Positions 1,808 through 45,311 of a DNA stretch of 64,000 nt are shown piece by piece. The stretch's first letter is position 1. The number at the start of each line of letters is the position of its first letter. The notes under the pieces are model-generated. The model was not told the origin of the DNA. It saw only the letters and a list, made by a program, of their open reading frames with translations, and did not search any database. Made by a program: the position numbers and the translations under genes. The stretch lies in IMG/VR virus record IMGVR_UViG_3300031952_000001, positions 147,983 to 211,982 of that record. One strand, given 5' to 3'.

Positions 1808-3076
1808 CTACCAGAGCACCGAGAGGGTCGGCAGCGCGTTCGTGTAGGAGTTCTCCACGACGGCCTTCTCCTTGAAGTGCCGCAGCTCGACGAGGTACGA
1901 GAAGCGCTCCTCGAAGGGGCTGACGCGCTCGGTCTGGGACACGATCCGGGCCATGTCCTTGATCCAGCACCGTCCCGCCTCATGGACGACAGGGTAGACC
2001 TTTCCCTCGTTGCCGGGTTGATTGATCCCGCTGAGTGGGGTGATCAGTATCTTCTTGATCGGCAGATCCTTCTTGGTCTCGACCAGCTCCCACTTCTCGG
2101 GGTTCGGATCCGGGATCGAGACCTCTCTGCCGGAGGCGAGCACAATGGTCGCGCTCCAGGTCTCCTTGAGGGAGGACTTCGATATGTCCCGGTCCCACTC
2201 GACCACGTCGAAGGAGAACTTGGGAAATATATTCATATTCATGCCCAGATTCTTGGTCATCTCCGCGGCTCGCTGTATTCGTATGTCGGCCAGCTTCCCC
2301 TCCATGTCGAGCCGGTACTCCTCCCCCACCTCGTCCACCAGGGACTTGTACTCGGCCATGTGTTCTTTCGGGATGCGGAGGCCTCGGTCCAGGATGTCCT
2401 TCATCTCTCTCAGACGGATCTTCATGGCCTCCCTCCGTGCTGCATCCCCGGGGATCTTAACCGTGAATTCGCTACCATCACCGAAGACTTCCTTCGACAT
2501 GCCGTACGACTCGGCGAACAGCGCGAGCTTCTCGGCCGTGGAACGCTTCTGCACCTCGGGGTTCGGCTTCTCGAACCCGTGAGCCACGGCCTCTTGCTTT
2601 TCGAAGTGATCTCGATCCACCTGGAGAAGCTCCTTCTTCACCCCGAGAGCTGCAAACATGCGCCTTTCGGCATACGCGAGGTCCGCGTTGAAGTAGCCCT
2701 CCTTGAACAGGGATGCTGCGAGAGGGATCTTCTCGATTCTCTCCCGCGTGATGGGGGTGTTCGGGAGGATCGGCCCCGAAACCAGGTCTTCGAACTTCGT
2801 TCGAGGAACGTCCTTCACCGAAAGATCCTTCTCCTTCGGTGTCAGATGGCTCAGCTCCAAGGACTTGGTGGTCTTCCTGTGTTTCAGAAGGAGGTCATCC
2901 TCCGCAAACCACCGGGCCACTCCGGAGTACGCATCCATGTCGAGTACCACCCCCACGAGGTTCATGGGGTCGTCGGTGCACTGGATACGGGGGATTTTTA
3001 CGATCCCCATGGCACCGTGATACTCCTTACCTTCCGCGTTGACCCGTACCGCGTCACCTTCTTGGAACTTCGACAT
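1808..3076 (-). CDS. hypothetical protein with SH3-like N-terminus
   Basis: MSKFQEGDAVRV start; phage-like codon usage over about 420 codons. Confidence 0.7.
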   Translation of the reverse strand: MSKFQEGDAVRVNAEGKEYHGAMGIVKIPRIQCTDDPMNLVGVVLDMDAYSGVARWFAEDDLLLKHRKTTKSLELSHLTPKEKDLSVKDVPRTKFEDLVSGPILPNTPITRERIEKIPLAASLFKEGYFNADLAYAERRMFAALGVKKELLQVDRDHFEKQEAVAHGFEKPNPEVQKRSTAEKLALFAESYGMSKEVFGDGSEFTVKIPGDAARREAMKIRLREMKDILDRGLRIPKEHMAEYKSLVDEVGEEYRLDMEGKLADIRIQRAAEMTKNLGMNMNIFPKFSFDVVEWDRDISKSSLKETWSATIVLASGREVSIPDPNPEKWELVETKKDLPIKKILITPLSGINQPGNEGKVYPVVHEAGRCWIKDMARIVSQTERVSPFEERFSYLVELRHFKEKAVVENSYTNALPTLSVLW

Positions 3077-36392: not shown

Positions 36393-37181
36393 GTGGAACT
36401 GACCACTCTCCAGCCGGCTTGCAAGATTTGCATCCTGATGCGGTTGGACAGCAACCTGTGGAAGGAGCTGCACCGCAAGGTCATCATCGAGCGGGTCAGC
36501 CGGGCGAAGGCGCTGACGTGGCTCAACCAGCGGGCGGAGATCCTGAACATCACCCGGGAGGAGAACAACTGGGAGCTGTTGCCGACGTTTTCCACCAACG
36601 GCATCGTCAAGCACTTCAAGATGCACATCACGGACTTCACCCAGGTCGAGGCGTACATCGCGGCTCAGAACATGTTCTCTCCCGAGGCTCGGGCGAACCC
36701 CGCGAAGATGGCGCTCCAGGCCTCGGCGGCATCGGAGATGGACGACTATCTCCGCCTGGAGTCCCTGATCTCCGCCTCGGTGGTGCAGCTCGAAAGCTAC
36801 GAGAAGACCTTGTCCGCGGCGGCCAGGAAGAACCAGGGTGACGGCAAGTCGCCGCCCATCGTGAACCTGGAGGAGGTGAAGATTTTCCAGAAGCTGATCC
36901 GGGAGCAGATGGCGATGAAGAAGGAGCTGGCGGTCCTTCAGGCCAAGCAGGCGGTCGCCGGCACCGCCCTCCGGGACGCTCTGGAGCGGGTCGTTGAAGT
37001 TGTTATGAACGCAATTCAGGATTCCATGGTAGAATTGCGGTCGAACCTGCACCAGCAGTACGCGAACCCGGAGTGGGGCGAGAAGCTGGCGAGGATGGTG
37101 GCCTACAAGATCGGGGAGCCCTTGAAGGCGTCGATCCCCTCGATTTTGGACGAGGTCTACAAGAAGTACAAAATACGATGA
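36393..37181 (+). CDS. candidate terminase small subunit
   Basis: N-terminal CKIC plus helical domain; lies two genes upstream of terL; function inferred mainly from position. Confidence 0.45.
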   Translation: MELTTLQPACKICILMRLDSNLWKELHRKVIIERVSRAKALTWLNQRAEILNITREENNWELLPTFSTNGIVKHFKMHITDFTQVEAYIAAQNMFSPEARANPAKMALQASAASEMDDYLRLESLISASVVQLESYEKTLSAAARKNQGDGKSPPIVNLEEVKIFQKLIREQMAMKKELAVLQAKQAVAGTALRDALERVVEVVMNAIQDSMVELRSNLHQQYANPEWGEKLARMVAYKIGEPLKASIPSILDEVYKKYKIR

Positions 37182-37468
37182 GCCCAGTCACAAAGACCTT
37201 CACCCATGATCACGTCGTCCGCGACCCTGCGGGGAAACCGGTCGGCCGCGCGATCCTACTCAACGACAAGGGCTACACCGAGGGAGCCCCGCTTCCGGTG
37301 GCGGTCCTGCTCGTCCCGGTGACCGCGACGAAGAACATCCGGAGCTTCGTGTTCTACATCGACGGCATCGCGTACAGGATCCCGCAGGACACGCCTCAAG
37401 GGCGGATACTGCTCTCAGAGGGCATGCACAAGGTCAACCACGTTGTGCTCCAGAAAGTGAACCCGTAA
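37178..37468 (+). CDS. hypothetical protein
   Basis: Coupled to both neighbours. Confidence 0.6.
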   Translation: MSPVTKTFTHDHVVRDPAGKPVGRAILLNDKGYTEGAPLPVAVLLVPVTATKNIRSFVFYIDGIAYRIPQDTPQGRILLSEGMHKVNHVVLQKVNP

Positions 37469-39723
37469 TGGAGACCGGTTTTCTCGACAACATCGGCAAG
37501 AGGATCGACACTGCGCTGGAGTCGAGGACGTCGAGCGGCTTGACCGGTCCCGAGGTCGAGTACCTCCGCCGGCCGGCTCCGAACATCTGCGAGTGGGTGA
37601 CCGGGCTCGACTACTGGAACGTGCCCACGACGTTCGACCACACCCGCCAGTACCAGATCATGCGCGACCTGTTCGGGGTGCGCTGTCCGATCTGCAACTC
37701 GATGAAGCCCGAGGCGGTCGACTGCTGGGGCAAGAGCCGGATGTACCTGGAGTCCGAGGTGCTGCTCTGCTGGGTCGAGAGCGAGCAGGACTTCGTGTGC
37801 CCGCGGTGCGGCAGCACGCAGCGCGAGCTGCTCCACGACGGCATCCTCCAGGCCTACAACGAGACGATCATCCTGGCCGGCATGCGCTCGGGGAAATCGT
37901 ACCTGGGCGCTCACATCGGAGGGTACTTCGAGAACTTCATATCGAGCCGGGCGATGTTCGGCCAGGGCCACCTCCAGAGGATGCTGAAGCAGGAGAAGAG
38001 CGAGTGGTTCGAGGTCACCTTCTCCGCGTCGACCGCGACCCAGGCGCAGCAGACCATCTACGCCAAGTACCGCGAGATGCGGAAGAACTCTCCGTGGATT
38101 CAGCGCTACTCCTCGTGGGTCCAGGCCTTCGAGTCTCAGCAACCCTCGGAAGTCGACCGCTGGATGTACAACACCAACGCCGACGCCATCCTGGATGGCT
38201 GGGCGCGCGTGCGCTACAACCGCATCGCTAGCGACTCGGCCGGTGTCGCCGGCAAGACGCGCATCATGGCGTCCATCGACGAGTGGGCTCGTCTCGCGGA
38301 CACCGAGGGCAGCCGCTCCGCGAAGGAGCTGTACCGCGTGCTGAACCAGTCCCTCGCCACGGTCCGCGCCGCGGTGATGCAGAACGAGCTTCCGTCTTTC
38401 CTGGGGATGATGCTGAACGTGACCTCGCCGATCTCGCAGGACGACCCGGCGATGGAGCACTACAACAAGGCGGCCGAGGGGATCCTGCCGAGGACGTACT
38501 ACTGGAAGGGCGCGACCTGGGACTTCAACCCGCAGATGCCGCGGCACGTCTTCGACGACGACTACGTGAAGGACGCCATGGGCGCGGAGCGTGACTTCGG
38601 GGCGAACCCGCCGAACGCCGAGAGCCCCTACGTGGACGACCCGAAGCGTTTCTGGAAGAGCATCGACTTCGACCGCGACCCCATCGCCCGCTTCCGGCCC
38701 TCGTTCTTCGAGGACACGACGGGCAAGAAGTACATCGGCATGGAGGTCGAGGAGTGCAAGCTGAACCACGTCAACCCCTACTACCTGTTCGGTGACGCCG
38801 GGCTCAACTGGGACTCGTTCGGGCTCGTCATGGCGCACTCCGAGTGGCTCAACGTGGACGACTTCGAGTCCGACGAGACTGGCCCCGACGGAGAGCCCCT
38901 CATTCGCCAGAGGGCTCCTGTGGGCCGCGGCAGGATGGAGCCTGTCGACGAGTACGGGGTCGTCTTCTCCGAGGACCTGGGGACGTTCCTCGGCGCGAAC
39001 ATGCCGGTCGGTGCCGACGGCGACATGATCATGGAGGCTCAGAAGAACCGCCGCCGCATGGCGAACTACTTCACCGCCTCGAACAAGGCCGGCGCTCGTC
39101 CGTTCGATCACATGAACGAGATGCTGTGCACGGTGATCGACTTCTCCGTGCGCATCGTTCCGACCCGGGAGCGGGACATCTGGTTCAACTCGGTCGTGAA
39201 CATCATCGCCGAGGTCCAGAAGAAGGTCCGGATCGCCGGGGTGGCGTTCGACCACTGGAACGCCGAGTCCACGATCCAGCAGCTCCGGACGATGGGCATC
39301 ATCACGACGAAGGTCCAGCTCGGGCCGGTCCACTTCATGAACTTCCTGCGGATGACCTACAACGGCCGGGTGAAGCTCCTTCCGCCACATGCGGAGGACA
39401 CCGTGGGCATCACGGACACGGGGGCCCTCGTGATCGCGACCCCGCAGGAGCAGATGCAAGGGCAGTCCGTCGCGCTGGTCGAGCTGCTCAAGCTCACGCG
39501 GTCTCCGGACCTGAAGAAGTTCTTCAACCCGAAGAAGGGGACCGTCCGGGGTCGAGACTCGGACGATCTCGCGCGCTGCTACGTCGGCGTCCACCATCTC
39601 ATCCAGGATTCTATTGTGGATTCTCAGGCAAATATGAAGAGAAAGATGAATATACGAAAGAGAATGGCTGCCACGGATACAAGCGCTCTAGGCTCTGTTG
39701 TCTCGGGGAGAGGTTCCTGGTAG
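37468..39723 (+). CDS. terL: terminase large subunit
   Basis: Walker A ILAGMRSGKSY, Walker B ASIDEWAR, nuclease acidic motifs GDAG..DSFG, FDHWN, SDDLA; zinc-ribbon insert CPIC...CPRC. Confidence 0.9.
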   Translation: METGFLDNIGKRIDTALESRTSSGLTGPEVEYLRRPAPNICEWVTGLDYWNVPTTFDHTRQYQIMRDLFGVRCPICNSMKPEAVDCWGKSRMYLESEVLLCWVESEQDFVCPRCGSTQRELLHDGILQAYNETIILAGMRSGKSYLGAHIGGYFENFISSRAMFGQGHLQRMLKQEKSEWFEVTFSASTATQAQQTIYAKYREMRKNSPWIQRYSSWVQAFESQQPSEVDRWMYNTNADAILDGWARVRYNRIASDSAGVAGKTRIMASIDEWARLADTEGSRSAKELYRVLNQSLATVRAAVMQNELPSFLGMMLNVTSPISQDDPAMEHYNKAAEGILPRTYYWKGATWDFNPQMPRHVFDDDYVKDAMGAERDFGANPPNAESPYVDDPKRFWKSIDFDRDPIARFRPSFFEDTTGKKYIGMEVEECKLNHVNPYYLFGDAGLNWDSFGLVMAHSEWLNVDDFESDETGPDGEPLIRQRAPVGRGRMEPVDEYGVVFSEDLGTFLGANMPVGADGDMIMEAQKNRRRMANYFTASNKAGARPFDHMNEMLCTVIDFSVRIVPTRERDIWFNSVVNIIAEVQKKVRIAGVAFDHWNAESTIQQLRTMGIITTKVQLGPVHFMNFLRMTYNGRVKLLPPHAEDTVGITDTGALVIATPQEQMQGQSVALVELLKLTRSPDLKKFFNPKKGTVRGRDSDDLARCYVGVHHLIQDSIVDSQANMKRKMNIRKRMAATDTSALGSVVSGRGSW

Positions 39724-39726
39724 TAA

Positions 39727-40881
39727 ATGCACCGTGCCTTCAAATTCCGACTCTTTACGAACTCCAATCAAGAGCGCGAACTCGGCGTCATGCTCGAAAC
39801 GCACCGCCGACTCTACAACCTCTGTTTGGAGCAACGGCGTGACCTCTACCGCCAGCACGGACATTCCGTCCGGTACATCGACCAGTCTGCGGAGTTCAAA
39901 GACCTGCGCAGCGACAACGCCTACTTCGCGCGGATCAACTTCTCTTCGGCTCAGGCCACGATGCGCCGTCTCGACAAGTCGTTCGTCGCGTTTTTCCGTC
40001 GCGTGAAGGCCGGACAGACGCCCGGCTATCCGCGTTTCAAGGCCAGCGACCGTTTCGACAGCATCGAGTTCCCGAACTACGGCGACGGCATCCGCCTGAA
40101 CGGCAATCGGCTTCGAGTTCAGCACGTTGGTGTGATTCGCTGTAAGGTTCACCGTCCCGTCGAGGGTGCAGTCAAGACGGCCACGCTCAAGCGCGAGGGT
40201 GGCAAGTGGTTCGTGATTCTGTCCTGCGATCTCGGAGACATTTGGGTTGAGCCGAGCACTCTTCCCGCCGTTGGCATCGACGTGGGTCTCGAAAACTTCC
40301 TCACCACTTCTGACGGTGAGGTCGTCGAGAACCCACGCTTCCTCAAGAAGGAACTCCCCGCCCTGCGCCGTGCTCAGCGTGCCGTCTCTCGCAAGAAGAA
40401 GGGTGGAGCGAATCGACGAAAGGCCGTCAAGGGCGTTCGTGTTATTCATGCGCACGTCGCCAACCAGCGGCGCGAGCATCATCATAAAACTGCTCTGAAC
40501 TTGATCCGTTGCTACGGCTTGATCGCGGTGGAGAGCCTGAACATTCTCGGAATGGTCAGGAACCACCGGCTCAGCCAAGCAATCGCGGACGCCGCATGGG
40601 GCGGCTTCCTGACGGTCCTGGGACACAAGGCTGAAAGAGCCGGTGTCACTGTGATGGCTGTAAATGCGTGGGGCACAAGCCAGGAGTGCAGCGGTTGCGG
40701 CGAAGACGTACACAAGGAGCTTCGTGTGCGTCAACACGTCTGCCCGCACTGTGGCCTGTCCCTGCACCGAGATGAGAACGCGGCCAGGAACATCCTGACT
40801 CGCGCTCTCCAGGCCCGGATGGGGCCTGTGGGCGTCAACGGGGAGAGCCCCGTTGCCCAAGAAGCCGTCTGCTTTAGCTGA
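39727..40881 (+). CDS. tnpB: RNA-guided endonuclease TnpB (IS200/IS605 family), no tnpA
   Basis: RAFKFRL HTH start, GYPRFK, RuvC VGIDVG / IAVESL / HRDENAARNI, zinc finger CSGC...CPHC. Confidence 0.95.
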   Translation: MHRAFKFRLFTNSNQERELGVMLETHRRLYNLCLEQRRDLYRQHGHSVRYIDQSAEFKDLRSDNAYFARINFSSAQATMRRLDKSFVAFFRRVKAGQTPGYPRFKASDRFDSIEFPNYGDGIRLNGNRLRVQHVGVIRCKVHRPVEGAVKTATLKREGGKWFVILSCDLGDIWVEPSTLPAVGIDVGLENFLTTSDGEVVENPRFLKKELPALRRAQRAVSRKKKGGANRRKAVKGVRVIHAHVANQRREHHHKTALNLIRCYGLIAVESLNILGMVRNHRLSQAIADAAWGGFLTVLGHKAERAGVTVMAVNAWGTSQECSGCGEDVHKELRVRQHVCPHCGLSLHRDENAARNILTRALQARMGPVGVNGESPVAQEAVCFS

Positions 40882-40913
40882 CGGAGTCATCACCGGAACT
40901 GTCGCTACTGGGA
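40800..40913 (+). ncRNA. predicted TnpB omegaRNA 3' scaffold (right-end hairpin ending TCAC at 40893) plus guide from 40894
   Basis: GAAGCCGTCTGCTTTAGCTGACGGAGTCATCAC resembles IS200/IS605 right ends; 5' boundary approximate. Confidence 0.7.
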
Positions 40914-40930
40914 GGAGGATCTGATAGGTC

Positions 40931-41104
40931 ATGCCAAAGCGTAAACCGGTCGAGGTCATCAAGGTCGACGCTGCCTCTCGCGAGGTTAAGACTTTGACAC
41001 CTCCTCCGTGCTACCATGCCCGTTGTTCGTACTGCCGCCCTGAGGTTTGCGGCGAGTGGTTCACCACCTGCAAGGAGCTTCCTGATGGCGATCACCCTCG
41101 ATGA
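40931..41104 (+). CDS. 57-aa cysteine-rich protein (not in the ORF track)
   Basis: GGAGGAGG RBS; MPKRKPVEVIK...CYHARCSYCRPEVCGEWFTTC. Confidence 0.6.
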   Translation: MPKRKPVEVIKVDAASREVKTLTPPPCYHARCSYCRPEVCGEWFTTCKELPDGDHPR

Positions 41105-41948
41105 AGCGATAGAGTCCGCCAAGCTGTCCGCCGGCAAGGAGCGAATCCTTCGGCAGCAGCACTACTCGGACCTCCTCAACCAGCTCCCCGAGGAGGAGCG
41201 GTTCACCTTCACGATGGCGCTCGCCGAGCTGGACATCGGCCCTCGGACCGGCAACGTTGCGGCCTCCGCCGCGGTGGCCGAGTTCCTGCGCTCCGGGGCT
41301 GTGCGGGACGTCCTGCGCCAGAACACGGGGCTGGATGATCGGGCCATCGAGAACCGGCTCGTTAAGGCCGCGATGCACCGGGACGCGCAGTGGTGGCAGA
41401 ACCTGAAGGACCGGTTCAAGAACTGGTGGAGCCAAGGTCCCGAGGACGAGTACCAAGAGGAGTTCGGTGAGCCGTTCCCCGAGAGGGAACCAGGTACTGA
41501 AGACATGTACAGCATGGAACCGAAGGAAGTCATTGAGCCGATGGCCGAGCCCGCGCCGCCGGGGTACGGTCCTGGACCTGAGCCGAACATCCCGCCGCCT
41601 CCGGAGGAGATGCCGGGCCCGCCGGTTGAGCCCGTGGGGATCCCCGTGACCGAGGAGCCCCCACCGCCTCCTCCGGGCTTCGAAGACAAGCGGGACATGC
41701 CGGAGATGATCCCCGTCAAGTCGAGCAACCTGGAGGCTGTGGGGTACATTCCAGAGGAGGAGCTGCTCTACATCATCTTCGCGGAGAAGCGCTCGACCCC
41801 GCGGACCCTCTACAGGTACAGCAACGTCTCCCAGTCGGAGTTCGATGACCTGCTCACCGCCGACTCCCAGGGAAAATACTTCCATCAATACATTCGGAAC
41901 ACGAAACCGTACACAGGTCCCATCGATCCGGGCGCGTACGGCCTCTAG
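41085..41948 (+). CDS. Pro-rich protein with C-terminal KTSC domain
   Basis: PVKSSNLEAVGY...LYRYSNV...LLTADSQGKYFHQYIR; AAGGAG RBS before MAITLD. Confidence 0.8.
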   Translation: MAITLDEAIESAKLSAGKERILRQQHYSDLLNQLPEEERFTFTMALAELDIGPRTGNVAASAAVAEFLRSGAVRDVLRQNTGLDDRAIENRLVKAAMHRDAQWWQNLKDRFKNWWSQGPEDEYQEEFGEPFPEREPGTEDMYSMEPKEVIEPMAEPAPPGYGPGPEPNIPPPPEEMPGPPVEPVGIPVTEEPPPPPPGFEDKRDMPEMIPVKSSNLEAVGYIPEEELLYIIFAEKRSTPRTLYRYSNVSQSEFDDLLTADSQGKYFHQYIRNTKPYTGPIDPGAYGL

Positions 41949-41955
41949 ACCTCTG

Positions 41956-41987
41956 TTTTAAAAATCCAAGACTGCCGCTGGTATACT
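41956..41987 (+). promoter_or_regulatory. class II promoter
   Basis: TTTTAAAAATCC-N14-TATACT. Confidence 0.75.
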
Positions 41988-42006
41988 GGAGCCTTCAGGA
42001 GGTCCC

Positions 42007-43640: not shown

Positions 43641-45311
43641 ATGGTTTTGGCACTCGTAAGACCCTCAGGCATAGTTCGAAACTTTGTCGAGGCTACCGAC
43701 GTTCTGAACGCTCGGTACATCGACAACGCCGCTCCTGCCGGGACGATGGACATTGGCACTGTCAATGCCACTACGATCAATTTCGGTGCTGCGGGCACAA
43801 CGATCAACATCCCCGGTACGCTGCATCTGATCGACGGCAGTGTTCTCACGGGTGACGGTAACGTCACCCTGGGTGGGGGTGATGGTGATACCATCACTCT
43901 CGGCGGGGCGTTTGTCTCGGCGGGCGACATCGTGAACATCGGTACGGCCGGAGCTACAGACACGATTGTCAGTCTTCGGGTCGACATGACCATCGCCGAC
44001 ACGAAGGACCTCCGGTTCAGCCGTGTCACCGGTACGGGCGTCATGGTCCTGCCGAGCACGTCGGCGGGTGAGGCCGGCGCGATCCGGACCACCGCGGGCG
44101 GTGCGTTCGAGTGGTGGAACGGTGCTGCGTGGGTCGCCGCGGGAGCCGCGGCCGGCAACACGTTGCAGCAGTCGTACGACGCCGGCACCGGCACGATCAC
44201 CCTCGATGCTTCCGGCGACTTCATCATCAACCTGGCTACGGCTGCGGCACCTGCTGGTGATGATTTCATCGTGAATGCAGGCACCGACGGGCTGACGTTG
44301 CACATGTCCGGTGCGAACGCGATGAGCCTCCAGGCGGATGTCACCTCGTTCGCGGCTTCGGCGTCCACTACGATGGACCTCGATGCGGCGGGTGTGCTGT
44401 CGATCAACTCGTCCGCGGGTGTGATCAACATCGGCGATGATGCGATTGTTCAGAACATCTACATCGGTACCGGTGGTGCTCGAACCTTGGTTCAGCTCGG
44501 CAGCGCGGCTGTTGTCGAGGTCGAGGTCGATGCAGTTCTGATCGACATCAACGCGGGGGCCAACGGCTTCCATCTCGATGCGGCCGGCAACTCGAACATC
44601 ACGACCTCGGCCGGCATCCTGACGATCACCGCGGCGGCGGGTTCGACCTGGTCGACGGCGGCCGGCGCTCTGACCCTGACCTCGGCGGCTGCGGCCACCT
44701 GGTCGACGCTGGCGGGCGCGCTGTCCCTCACGGGCTTCACGGATCTGGCTCTGACCGCGACCGGCGGCGAGCTGACCTTCAGCGACAGCTGGCGGGCGGC
44801 CTCGGGCTACTCCGCGGCGATGCCGTTCGCGAATGCCCAGGCCGAGTGGACGTCGTTCGTGGCGAACTTCGGTGACGGCACCTCTCTGATCGCGGCGGTC
44901 AACGAGGCCTACTCGACGGGCGGCGGCTTCGAAGCCGTCACCACGGCCGGCACGACCGCGGGCTACGCCATCGGCGGTTCGGCCACGGACAACGAGATCG
45001 CGGATGCGGACGCGGACAGCGCGACCCTGCCCATCGCGAAGTGCTTCGGCTTCGCGAACGCAACGGTCGGTGCGGCCGGTACGGTCCTGGTACGGACGAG
45101 CGGCCGGATCATCGTGACCTCTCCGGCGAACGAGACCTGGGCGCGCGGCGAGATGATCTACCTGAGCACGACCGCGGGCCGAGTGACCAAGACGGCTCCG
45201 TCCGGTGCGGGCAACACGGTGCAGTGCGTTGGGTACGCGGCGGCGACGGATCTCGCCCCGGCTGGAACACATCAGATGTGGATCCACCTGACCATCCCGA
45301 CGTACGTGTAG
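43641..45311 (+). CDS. fibre protein with C-terminal DUF2190-like domain
   Basis: G/A/T-rich repeats, TLQQSYDAG, WARGEMIYLSTTAGRVTKTAP...QCVGYA. Confidence 0.7.
   Translation: MVLALVRPSGIVRNFVEATDVLNARYIDNAAPAGTMDIGTVNATTINFGAAGTTINIPGTLHLIDGSVLTGDGNVTLGGGDGDTITLGGAFVSAGDIVNIGTAGATDTIVSLRVDMTIADTKDLRFSRVTGTGVMVLPSTSAGEAGAIRTTAGGAFEWWNGAAWVAAGAAAGNTLQQSYDAGTGTITLDASGDFIINLATAAAPAGDDFIVNAGTDGLTLHMSGANAMSLQADVTSFAASASTTMDLDAAGVLSINSSAGVINIGDDAIVQNIYIGTGGARTLVQLGSAAVVEVEVDAVLIDINAGANGFHLDAAGNSNITTSAGILTITAAAGSTWSTAAGALTLTSAAAATWSTLAGALSLTGFTDLALTATGGELTFSDSWRAASGYSAAMPFANAQAEWTSFVANFGDGTSLIAAVNEAYSTGGGFEAVTTAGTTAGYAIGGSATDNEIADADADSATLPIAKCFGFANATVGAAGTVLVRTSGRIIVTSPANETWARGEMIYLSTTAGRVTKTAPSGAGNTVQCVGYAAATDLAPAGTHQMWIHLTIPTYV

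Follow-up and report, generated by a model that had tools for sequence, protein, structure and literature searches.

Introduction

TnpB proteins are encoded by some of the most abundant genes in prokaryotes, and why such genes persist without a transposase is a standing question. Here we analyse a lone tnpB gene that lies directly behind terL, the gene for the large terminase subunit, in a 64-kb stretch of viral DNA (called the window throughout; positions refer to it unless another contig is named). The window is the last 64 kb of the 212-kb viral contig IMGVR_UViG_3300031952_000001 (= Ga0315294_10000012), which comes from a sediment metagenome and represents a jumbo phage. Together with the scaffold of its guide RNA (omegaRNA), a guide template and the neighbouring terL end, the gene forms a cassette that appears to combine a guide derived from terL with a terL end immune to it.

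The guides of ISDra2 TnpB come from the DNA immediately 3′ of the right end of the element, and in the IS200/IS605 group of insertion sequences (ISs) the target site of the transposase is also the target-adjacent motif (TAM) recognised by TnpB (PMC8612924). TnpB can drive the spread of its IS among the copies of a multicopy plasmid without the transposase TnpA (Mears et al. 2025, PMC11870625). Homing is established for chromosomal donor sites and, by experiment, for plasmids; in the case of phages, homing into co-infecting genomes figures only as a theoretical possibility, in a 2026 review (PMC13565253).

The anatomy of the cassette, as described below, is something of which we are highly confident. 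As to its function, we lean – on the evidence of sequence comparison – towards an immobilised IS200/IS605 remnant that acts in a manner resembling intronless homing, or as a TnpA-independent TnpB gene drive, with an immune terL end. That the cassette serves in either homing or the disabling of rivals seems fairly probable.

The predicted guide template and its counterpart in TnpB-free relatives

Behind the right end of the element, the window reads C GGA ACT GTC GCT ACT GGG AGG AGG ATC TGA TAG. Set against the resident terL end, GGC TCT GTT GTC TCG GGG AGA GGT TCC TGG TAG, in the same codon register, it is identical at 20 of 33 nucleotides, with four identical and three conservative residues and the TAG in the same place. 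An initial annotation of the window, made from its sequence alone, had seized on this likeness – which proved correct when checked – to propose that the guide targets the terL allele of TnpB-free relatives.

Such relatives exist in several samples. Four of them (L001, L002, L003 and L058) show 99–100% identity to the window across the final 2 kb of terL; the allele class typified by L001 ends ...ACA GCC ATC GGG ACG GTC GCT ACC GGG AGG GGG AAC TGG TAG, encoding GTVATGRGNW, and the terL stop runs directly into a homologue of the open reading frame (ORF) that begins at 40931 in the window (TGG TAG ATG CCG AAG...). The DNA behind the right end, CGGAACTGTCGCTACTGGGAGGAGGATCTGATAG, is a 28/34 copy of this TnpB-free terL end, and 17 of its first 20 nucleotides match. 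The annotation had predicted all three features – the protein end, the match at 40894–40913 and the direct run into the 40931 ORF – and the four relatives bear it out; none of them ends in GSVVSGRGSW, and nothing else that it had listed as contrary evidence came to light.

At up to three mismatches, the guide 20-mer occurs once in the window, against 0.02 occurrences expected. Its uniqueness there, together with its counterpart at the orthologous terL end of the relatives, argues that the match between guide and terL is not due to chance. The remnant departs from the L001 allele at six positions, five of them GC-to-AT changes, and it carries an AGGAGG (40913–40918) upstream of the next gene.

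At the position of the match, the relatives have CCAT followed by CGGGACGGTCGCTACCGGGA, and the homology boundary lies at CCAT|CGGGACGG in the TnpB-free terL and at TCAC|CGGAACTG in the window. In independent insertions of the same IS family, CCAT stands directly 5′ of the left end, 13–15 nt before a conserved GGGGAC box (sites in L014, L016, L024, L025, L028, L030/31, L034, L043, L046, L050 and L078; the site in L052 is only partly visible, and those in L027 and L035 are less certain). In pairs of copies of one IS with different surroundings (L028 versus L031; L014 versus L050), divergence begins just before CCAT. From these comparisons we infer that CCAT is the TAM of this TnpB. As CCAT abuts the start of the homology behind the right end, an element of this family must have entered terL 3′ of that CCAT; and with the insertion placed there, within the last 11 codons, the predicted guide template is the relic of the severed 3′ end of terL. 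The template in the window is flanked by TCAC, not CCAT, and so should not be bound in cis.

The resident allele is of another kind. Its counterpart of the TAM is CTCT, a change from Ile to Leu, and only 11 of the 20 guide positions match, against a TAM and 17 of 20 in the TnpB-free alleles. Among the alleles compared, CCAT at this site is restricted to the L001 class.

CCAT is the reverse complement of ATGG, and in three copies (L016:5504-5520, L050:694-700 and L078:498-504) the IS sits exactly at the start codon of a gene running the opposite way; its left end thereby takes the place of the upstream region of that gene and, in L016, supplies a GGAGGA.

The nuclease gene and its RNA

The product of tnpB scores above the cut-offs for PF12323 (HTH_OrfB_IS605), PF01385 (OrfB_IS605) and PF07282 (TNB zinc ribbon), reaches 279.8 bits against the NCBIfam model guided_TnpB (cut-off 100) and matches ISDra2 TnpB with an E value of 1.4e-51. 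Residues D185, E269 and D349 align with D191, E278 and D361 of ISDra2 – the three RuvC acidic motifs already recognised by the annotation – and the catalytic D-E-D is invariant across 23 family members. The protein deviates at 2 highly conserved columns, against 0–18 in other members, and the ratio of nonsynonymous to synonymous substitution rates (dN/dS) relative to the closest IS copies is ~0.1. By these measures, tnpB shows no decay.

It is the single tnpB in the whole window and belongs to a large family: metagenomes hold thousands of TnpB homologues at least 65% identical to it, many on phage-like contigs and most with a Y1 TnpA directly upstream. The closest, 87–90% identical, belong to ordinary IS copies with a left end plus either tnpA or a small zinc-ribbon ORF. 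A search of 185,579 species-representative genomes for a host or donor gave a best TnpB match of only 43% identity; phages or uncultured hosts may be the main home of this subfamily.

The omegaRNA scaffold overlaps the end of the gene (Table 1). Over the last ~120 nt, RNAalifold analysis of 15 family members gives 24 base pairs, 17 of them with compensatory changes, and the same stretch of the window is nearly identical to that of transposase-bearing copies. An Rfam search of positions 37000–42000 (E <= 1) found no omegaRNA, group I intron or other family, its single match – to an internal ribosome entry site – being a chance one.

Two side observations concern the family at large. In some copies an Arc/ribbon-helix-helix-like ORF, and in others a small zinc-ribbon ORF, replaces tnpA and abuts tnpB (Table 1); Arc has been described as a repressor in IS605 elements (2026 preprint 10.64898/2026.09.24.754181). 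On one viral contig (L049:3001-4110), a related tnpB is broken and inverted, with its N-terminal half on one strand and its C-terminal half on the other.

Absence of the transposase and the left end

Two traits of an autonomous IS were sought, a Y1 TnpA and a subterminal left-end hairpin after the target tetranucleotide, and the cassette has neither: TnpA (Y1/HUH transposase) has no match in the window or at the locus, and left-end queries match, anywhere in the window, only the hairpin shared with the right end. Aligned with complete IS copies, homology starts at the tnpB ATG and stops exactly at ...GCCGTCTGCTTTAGCTGACGGAGTCATCAC, position 40893. The right end itself terminates in TCAC (40890–40893): four independent copies agree up to and including GTCATCAC and part immediately afterwards, and contigs from four metagenomes likewise break at 40893. 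These limits agree with the annotation, which had found no tnpA and no left end and had placed the right end at the same TCAC.

The cassette is thus best classed as a member of the TnpB/omegaRNA family and not as an autonomous IS. Lacking both left end and tnpA, this copy is excluded from TnpA-mediated transposition, which leaves recombination as its sole means of movement.

The left junction reads TAG TAA ATG, with the terL stop at 39721–39723, the TAA at 39724–39726 and the tnpB start at 39727, which confirms the 3-nt spacing first reported for it. In a close IS copy (L082) tnpA ends in AAG TAA followed by the tnpB ATG, and in L016, L051 and L052 the junction is TAG ATG. Given the arrangement in L082, the TAA of the window is probably the old tnpA stop, in which case the endpoint of the left deletion would fall between the two stop codons.

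The divergent flanks of the cassette

Identity between the window and its relatives drops towards the tnpB junction on the left (~1.00, then 0.95, 0.77 and 0.58) and recovers on the right (0.75, 0.92 and 0.92 up to 41073, then >=0.97). Over 39607–39681 the protein is identical to that of the relatives but for one residue, with most synonymous positions differing, overwhelmingly toward A/T. The switch to A/T-ending codons noted at the outset for the last ~40 terL codons is real: the G+C content at third codon positions (GC3) is 0.94 in the body of terL versus 0.47 in its last 40 codons, the lowest among 39 high-GC3 ORFs in the window (mean 0.79, standard deviation 0.13). As the annotation had warned, a few other gene ends in the window are moderately AT-shifted; those at 59.7 kb and 16.2 kb, considered as similar cases, show nothing comparable. 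The bias extends beyond terL, the differences between the window and L001-class genomes having a GC-to-AT balance of 37:10 in the two flanks, guide remnant included, versus 63:67 outside them (Fisher p = 3e-4).

A clue to the origin of these flanks comes from other allele classes. The resident tail, TSALGSVVSGRGSW, belongs to the same class as that of the TnpB-free P0123/L053, whose TerL is 83% identical, whose GC3 is 0.67 and whose terL ends in TSALGTVVSGRGRW, also without CCAT; codon choices in the right flank are common to the window and L053/L054. Copying of the resident end from the L053/P0123 lineage was considered and rejected at the DNA level: the tract is 68–72% identical to all sampled alleles, the protein tail alone being P0123-like. 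With every sampled allele about equally distant, no sampled lineage is the donor.

The description of the resident end as a recoded, immune allele thus holds in part. The missing TAM and the 9 mismatches in 20 agree with predicted immunity; "recoded" is too strong a word for an end that resembles a natural allele class and is not proven to have been recoded de novo. On the simplest reading, the whole block – terL end, tnpB, remnant and first part of the next gene – took shape in a relative of lower GC content, and homologous recombination then brought it into the backbone in which it is now found. Divergent, AT-biased flanks in a near-identical backbone, with a tail like that of a lower-GC lineage, would fit such an arrival; and because the AT shift includes the guide remnant and the right flank, import of the block accounts for them better than local recoding would. 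Import by recombination is what homing would yield, yet it is possible without a nuclease.

Populations with and without tnpB

The cassette recurs, identical, in the contigs assembled by Logan from a second sample, X2, and X1 and X2 hold the same strain. Sample X3, from sediment, contains the TnpB-free L001-type junction at depth 9 together with window-identical pieces of tnpB at depth 2.4–3.3, so that carriers and non-carriers coexist there; X4 holds an L003-type TnpB-free junction at depth 17. The locus therefore displays the trait expected of a free-standing homing endonuclease, a nuclease gene between conserved genes that is present or absent among near-identical genomes.

The end of terL varies among the TnpB-free genomes as well. 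In L003 (7086-7253, equivalent to window 39538–39723) it is a patchwork, with eight window-type sites upstream of the target (e.g. GAT TCT, AAT ATA and ATG), L001-type sites downstream and a dozen synonymous changes of its own. Over the final 117 nt of terL, its identity to L001 is 84%, versus ~99% in the rest of the gene, and this confinement of divergence marks the terL 3′ end as a hot spot of exchange.

In the wider phage group, the junction between terL and the small ORF is empty in many genomes and holds other cargo in the rest (Table 1). In L086-88 and L101/L107 the cargo is an ORF of 217–221 aa with no known function, in L105/L108 it consists of small repeated ORFs, and in L106 of a 332-aa EndoVII/HNH-like nuclease (PHROG 1035, E 1.6e-10) and a metallophosphoesterase. 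Mobile genes in general seem to use the junction as a landing site.

A possible mode of action and its alternatives

On the reading that we favour, an ancestral element would have inserted 3′ of CCAT in the last 11 terL codons of an L001-class phage, and a complete, divergent terL end without the TAM would then have taken the place of its left end and tnpA, so that full-length TerL would still be made. TnpB would be produced from the packaging-gene transcript, its omegaRNA guide would pair with the CCAT-flanked terL ends of co-infecting TnpB-free relatives, and TnpB would cut them. The break would either kill the rival genome or be repaired by recombination from the TnpB+ genome, a repair that would copy a block of ~1.5 kb: tnpB and its guide, together with the immune terL end on one side and the first part of the following gene on the other.

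A bolder form of this proposal, which we put forward tentatively and rate somewhat below even, is that of a natural viral RNA-guided "home-and-rescue" drive: a cassette past transposition that spreads only by cutting the terL of co-infecting sisters while providing an immune replacement end. The guide mismatches at positions 4, 7 and 16 and the patchwork end of L003 would then be traces of a continuing arms race between drive and resistance at the terL 3′ end.

Several observations speak against homing by this cassette. First, all sampled TnpB-free alleles mismatch the guide at positions 4, 7 and 16 (L003 at 19 as well). The proposal that the guide targets the TnpB-free allele thus stands as regards an orthologous, CCAT-flanked 17/20 target and falters as regards cutting: adjacent double mismatches within positions 1–12 abolish cleavage by ISDra2 (PMC10097598), and with two TAM-proximal mismatches here, cleavage of the sampled alleles is doubtful. 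No allele that matches the guide perfectly was found: two degenerate scans of viral contigs gave only L001-class alleles and unrelated AIGTVATG-coding genes, and the one metagenome scan added just a single distant relative. In addition, a scan for sigma70 promoters gave nothing promoter-like in the AT-rich stretch near tnpB – leaving unsupported the idea that the AT shift creates a tnpB promoter, and the expression from the late packaging operon proposed in the annotation a conjecture – and no RNA sequencing run containing the locus was found. Spread to another genomic background, which the annotation would imply, was not found either, the cassette having been seen in one backbone only. No similar architecture, with a duplicated gene end, was obvious among 31 viral TnpB loci, inspected by eye and not systematically, the TnpA-less copies among them keeping their left end or having an Arc-like ORF. 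Lastly, these phages are mosaic and the junction varies across the group, so that a divergent block alone is no proof of homing.

The mismatches may themselves have more than one cause. All three are at third codon positions and synonymous; they may reflect drift of the guide, which fits the GC-to-AT bias, or escape alleles, and the two TAM-proximal ones may already protect the sampled TnpB-free alleles.

The most serious alternative, unlikely though it seems to us, is that the cassette is an inert fossil. An IS605 element would have been inserted by TnpA at CCAT in a dispensable, disordered terL tail and truncated on the left by recombination with another terL allele, with tnpB and its guide surviving as passengers that no longer cut. 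The three mismatches with all sampled relatives, two of them TAM-proximal, suit this explanation, as do the GC-to-AT direction of five of the six differences in the remnant (expected from drift in non-coding DNA), the predicted disorder of a TerL tail that varies among lineages, and the single genomic background. A fossil nuclease gene would hardly be expected, though, to retain a full-length ORF, an intact triad, only two deviations at conserved columns and a dN/dS of ~0.1, beside a scaffold whose last ~120 nt are nearly identical to those of transposase-bearing copies; nor does it explain why the replacement terL end has neither TAM nor target.

Rather less probable still is a competition weapon without homing, in which TnpB is kept for cutting the terminase gene of co-infecting relatives and copying of the cassette is rare or irrelevant. 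It predicts the same anatomy as homing does, its target lies in a gene needed for packaging, and homing endonucleases act in this way between phages too divergent to recombine (PMC13565253). The sampled rivals, however, are ~100% identical in the flanks, so that repair by recombination with the TnpB+ genome ought to be easy, and a cut would take only the last codons of a disordered tail, so that killing would depend on the double-strand break itself.

A chance resemblance, a spliced insertion of the IStron kind or a TldR-type regulator without nuclease activity is very improbable: nothing beyond the original 20/33 match, weak alone, favours any of them. Against them, the relatives match 28/34 at the orthologous site, where the junction coincides exactly with the TAM of the family; neither a group I intron nor any other Rfam family was detected; the resident terL has its own in-frame stop; and the catalytic residues are intact. 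The template, flanked by TCAC, offers no binding in cis.

The terminase gene and other features

The ORF in front of tnpB is accepted as terL on two grounds: its product matches PHROG 17415 "terminase large subunit" (E 5.6e-38), and the 18 best PDB matches of an AlphaFold model built with 20 homologues (predicted local distance difference test, pLDDT, 68.6) are the large terminases of HK97, D6E and G20c. By sequence, the product has no match in Pfam and none in PDB. In the model, the last 15 residues (737–751) are predicted to be disordered. At the DNA level, GenBank phages gave no match to positions 37400–42000.

Two other divergent islands near terL, at 37.2–37.5 kb and 41.9 kb, were considered and set aside; neither is recoded coding sequence, the first being a small rearrangement at a start codon and the second an insertion of 13 nt between genes. 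The terL start (37455–37500) is rearranged, with TAATGGAG in the window versus an overlapping ATGA in the relatives, and the N-terminal peptide differs; the insertion (41949–41961, relative to the same genomes) lies just upstream of a promoter-like site, TTAAAA-18-TATACT. Further downstream, a 556-aa ORF (43641–45311) is only 57–80% identical to the relatives while the adjacent genes are ~100% identical; with a faint PHROG match only, it is a hypervariable gene with a possible role in host recognition.

Table 1. Features of the tnpB locus and of related contigs (window positions unless a contig is named).
Feature	Position	Strand	Basis or remark
Large terminase subunit gene, terL-like, 751 aa	37468..39723	+	Complete; length equal to TnpB-free relatives
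Divergent AT-shifted 3′ end of resident terL	39541..39723	+	Protein of relatives to ~codon 738, then SALGSVVSGRGSW tail
Resident counterpart of TAM and 20-nt target, CTCT + AGGCTCTGTTGTCTCGGGGA	39686..39709	+	Predicted immune: TAM lost, 9/20 mismatches
TAA, probable vestige of tnpA stop codon	39724..39726	+	Junction comparison with IS copies
tnpB, 384 aa, intact IS200/IS605-type RNA-guided nuclease gene	39727..40881	+	Pfam/NCBIfam matches, ISDra2 alignment
omegaRNA scaffold, overlapping tnpB 3′ end and right end, ending in TCAC	40771..40893	+	RNAalifold, boundary alignment
omegaRNA stem-loops	40812-40826, 40829-40859, 40865-40884	+	Plus long-range GAU/AUC pairing
Predicted guide template, 16–20 nt, CGGAACTGTCGCTACTGGGA	40894..40913	+	Immediately 3′ of right end; 17/20 to CCAT-flanked terL end of relatives
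Non-coding remnant of last 11 codons and stop of L001-class terL allele	40894..40927	+	28/34, in register
Conserved small ORF, 57 aa, directly after terL in TnpB-free relatives	40931..41104	+	First ~140 nt (to 41073) in divergent right flank
Junction cargo in distant relatives (= window 39724-40930)	L086:6248-7056; L101:6239-7058; L105:6152-7509; L106:6146-8323		
Variable-cargo IS copies	L020-L022, L032/L033 (~100 nt upstream of tnpB at 3001/2262/2386); L051:1-73; L052:101-226; L078:605-728		

Implications

With nuclease, guide, inferred TAM, susceptible allele, immune allele and coexisting populations all identified, the locus is a concrete natural test case for homing by TnpB among phages, and a handful of constructs would suffice to put the hypothesis to a direct test. 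If it is true, RNA-guided nucleases could assume in phages the ecological role that protein homing endonucleases play, and an insertion in an essential gene could be made harmless by a linked immune duplicate instead of an intron. Solo tnpB genes in viral genomes would then be worth re-reading as drives or weapons, and a compact TnpB with a short CCAT TAM would be gained.

Comparison with known systems

With ISDra2-type TnpB (Karvelis 2021, PMC8612924; Meers 2023, bioRxiv 10.1101/2023.03.14.532601) the cassette shares the protein family, a scaffold spread over the 3′ end of the gene and the right end, a guide taken from outside the right end and a TAM that is the target site of the transposase. 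The TAM itself differs, being TTGAT in ISDra2 versus the inferred CCAT here. In the restorative homing of ISDra2-type elements the sister chromosome is targeted, whereas the predicted target here is the orthologous site in a co-infecting phage genome; and, with neither TnpA nor left end, the cassette has no excision to restore.

Closer in this respect is the plasmid drive, or "transposon non-restorative homing" (PMC11870625; PMC13565253), in which element-free copies are cut and then repaired or replaced from the IS+ copy, presence or absence of the element being the basis of recognition, as it would be here. That drive is experimental and involves a complete IS in non-essential DNA; the present locus lies in a natural phage population, in a packaging gene, and has a replacement end without TAM and target.

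The homing endonucleases SegF, SegB and Mob of T-even phages offer a parallel: their genes lie between conserved genes, are present or absent in relatives, and cut a nearby conserved gene of the nuclease-free genome. The resident copy is shielded by substitutions, and flanking markers are co-converted (intronless homing, localized marker exclusion). Recognition in these systems is by protein, whereas here it would be by an RNA guide and a 4-nt TAM, the specificity being encoded beside the gene as a relic of the target.

IStrons, which join a group I intron to an IS605 or IS607 element with TnpB (PMC10690162), likewise place a TnpB element inside a gene without destroying it. They restore the gene by RNA splicing, whereas the cassette has a duplicate, divergent 3′ end at the DNA level and no detectable intron.

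In full-text literature searches, neither a TnpB directed against the terminase of a phage nor a linked immune gene end came up. Among engineered systems, the "home-and-rescue" or cleave-and-rescue drives are synthetic Cas9 constructs in insects whose guided nuclease attacks the wild-type form of an essential gene and which carry, tightly linked, a version of that gene immune to cleavage. Their logic is that proposed for the viral cassette, the resemblance being functional only.

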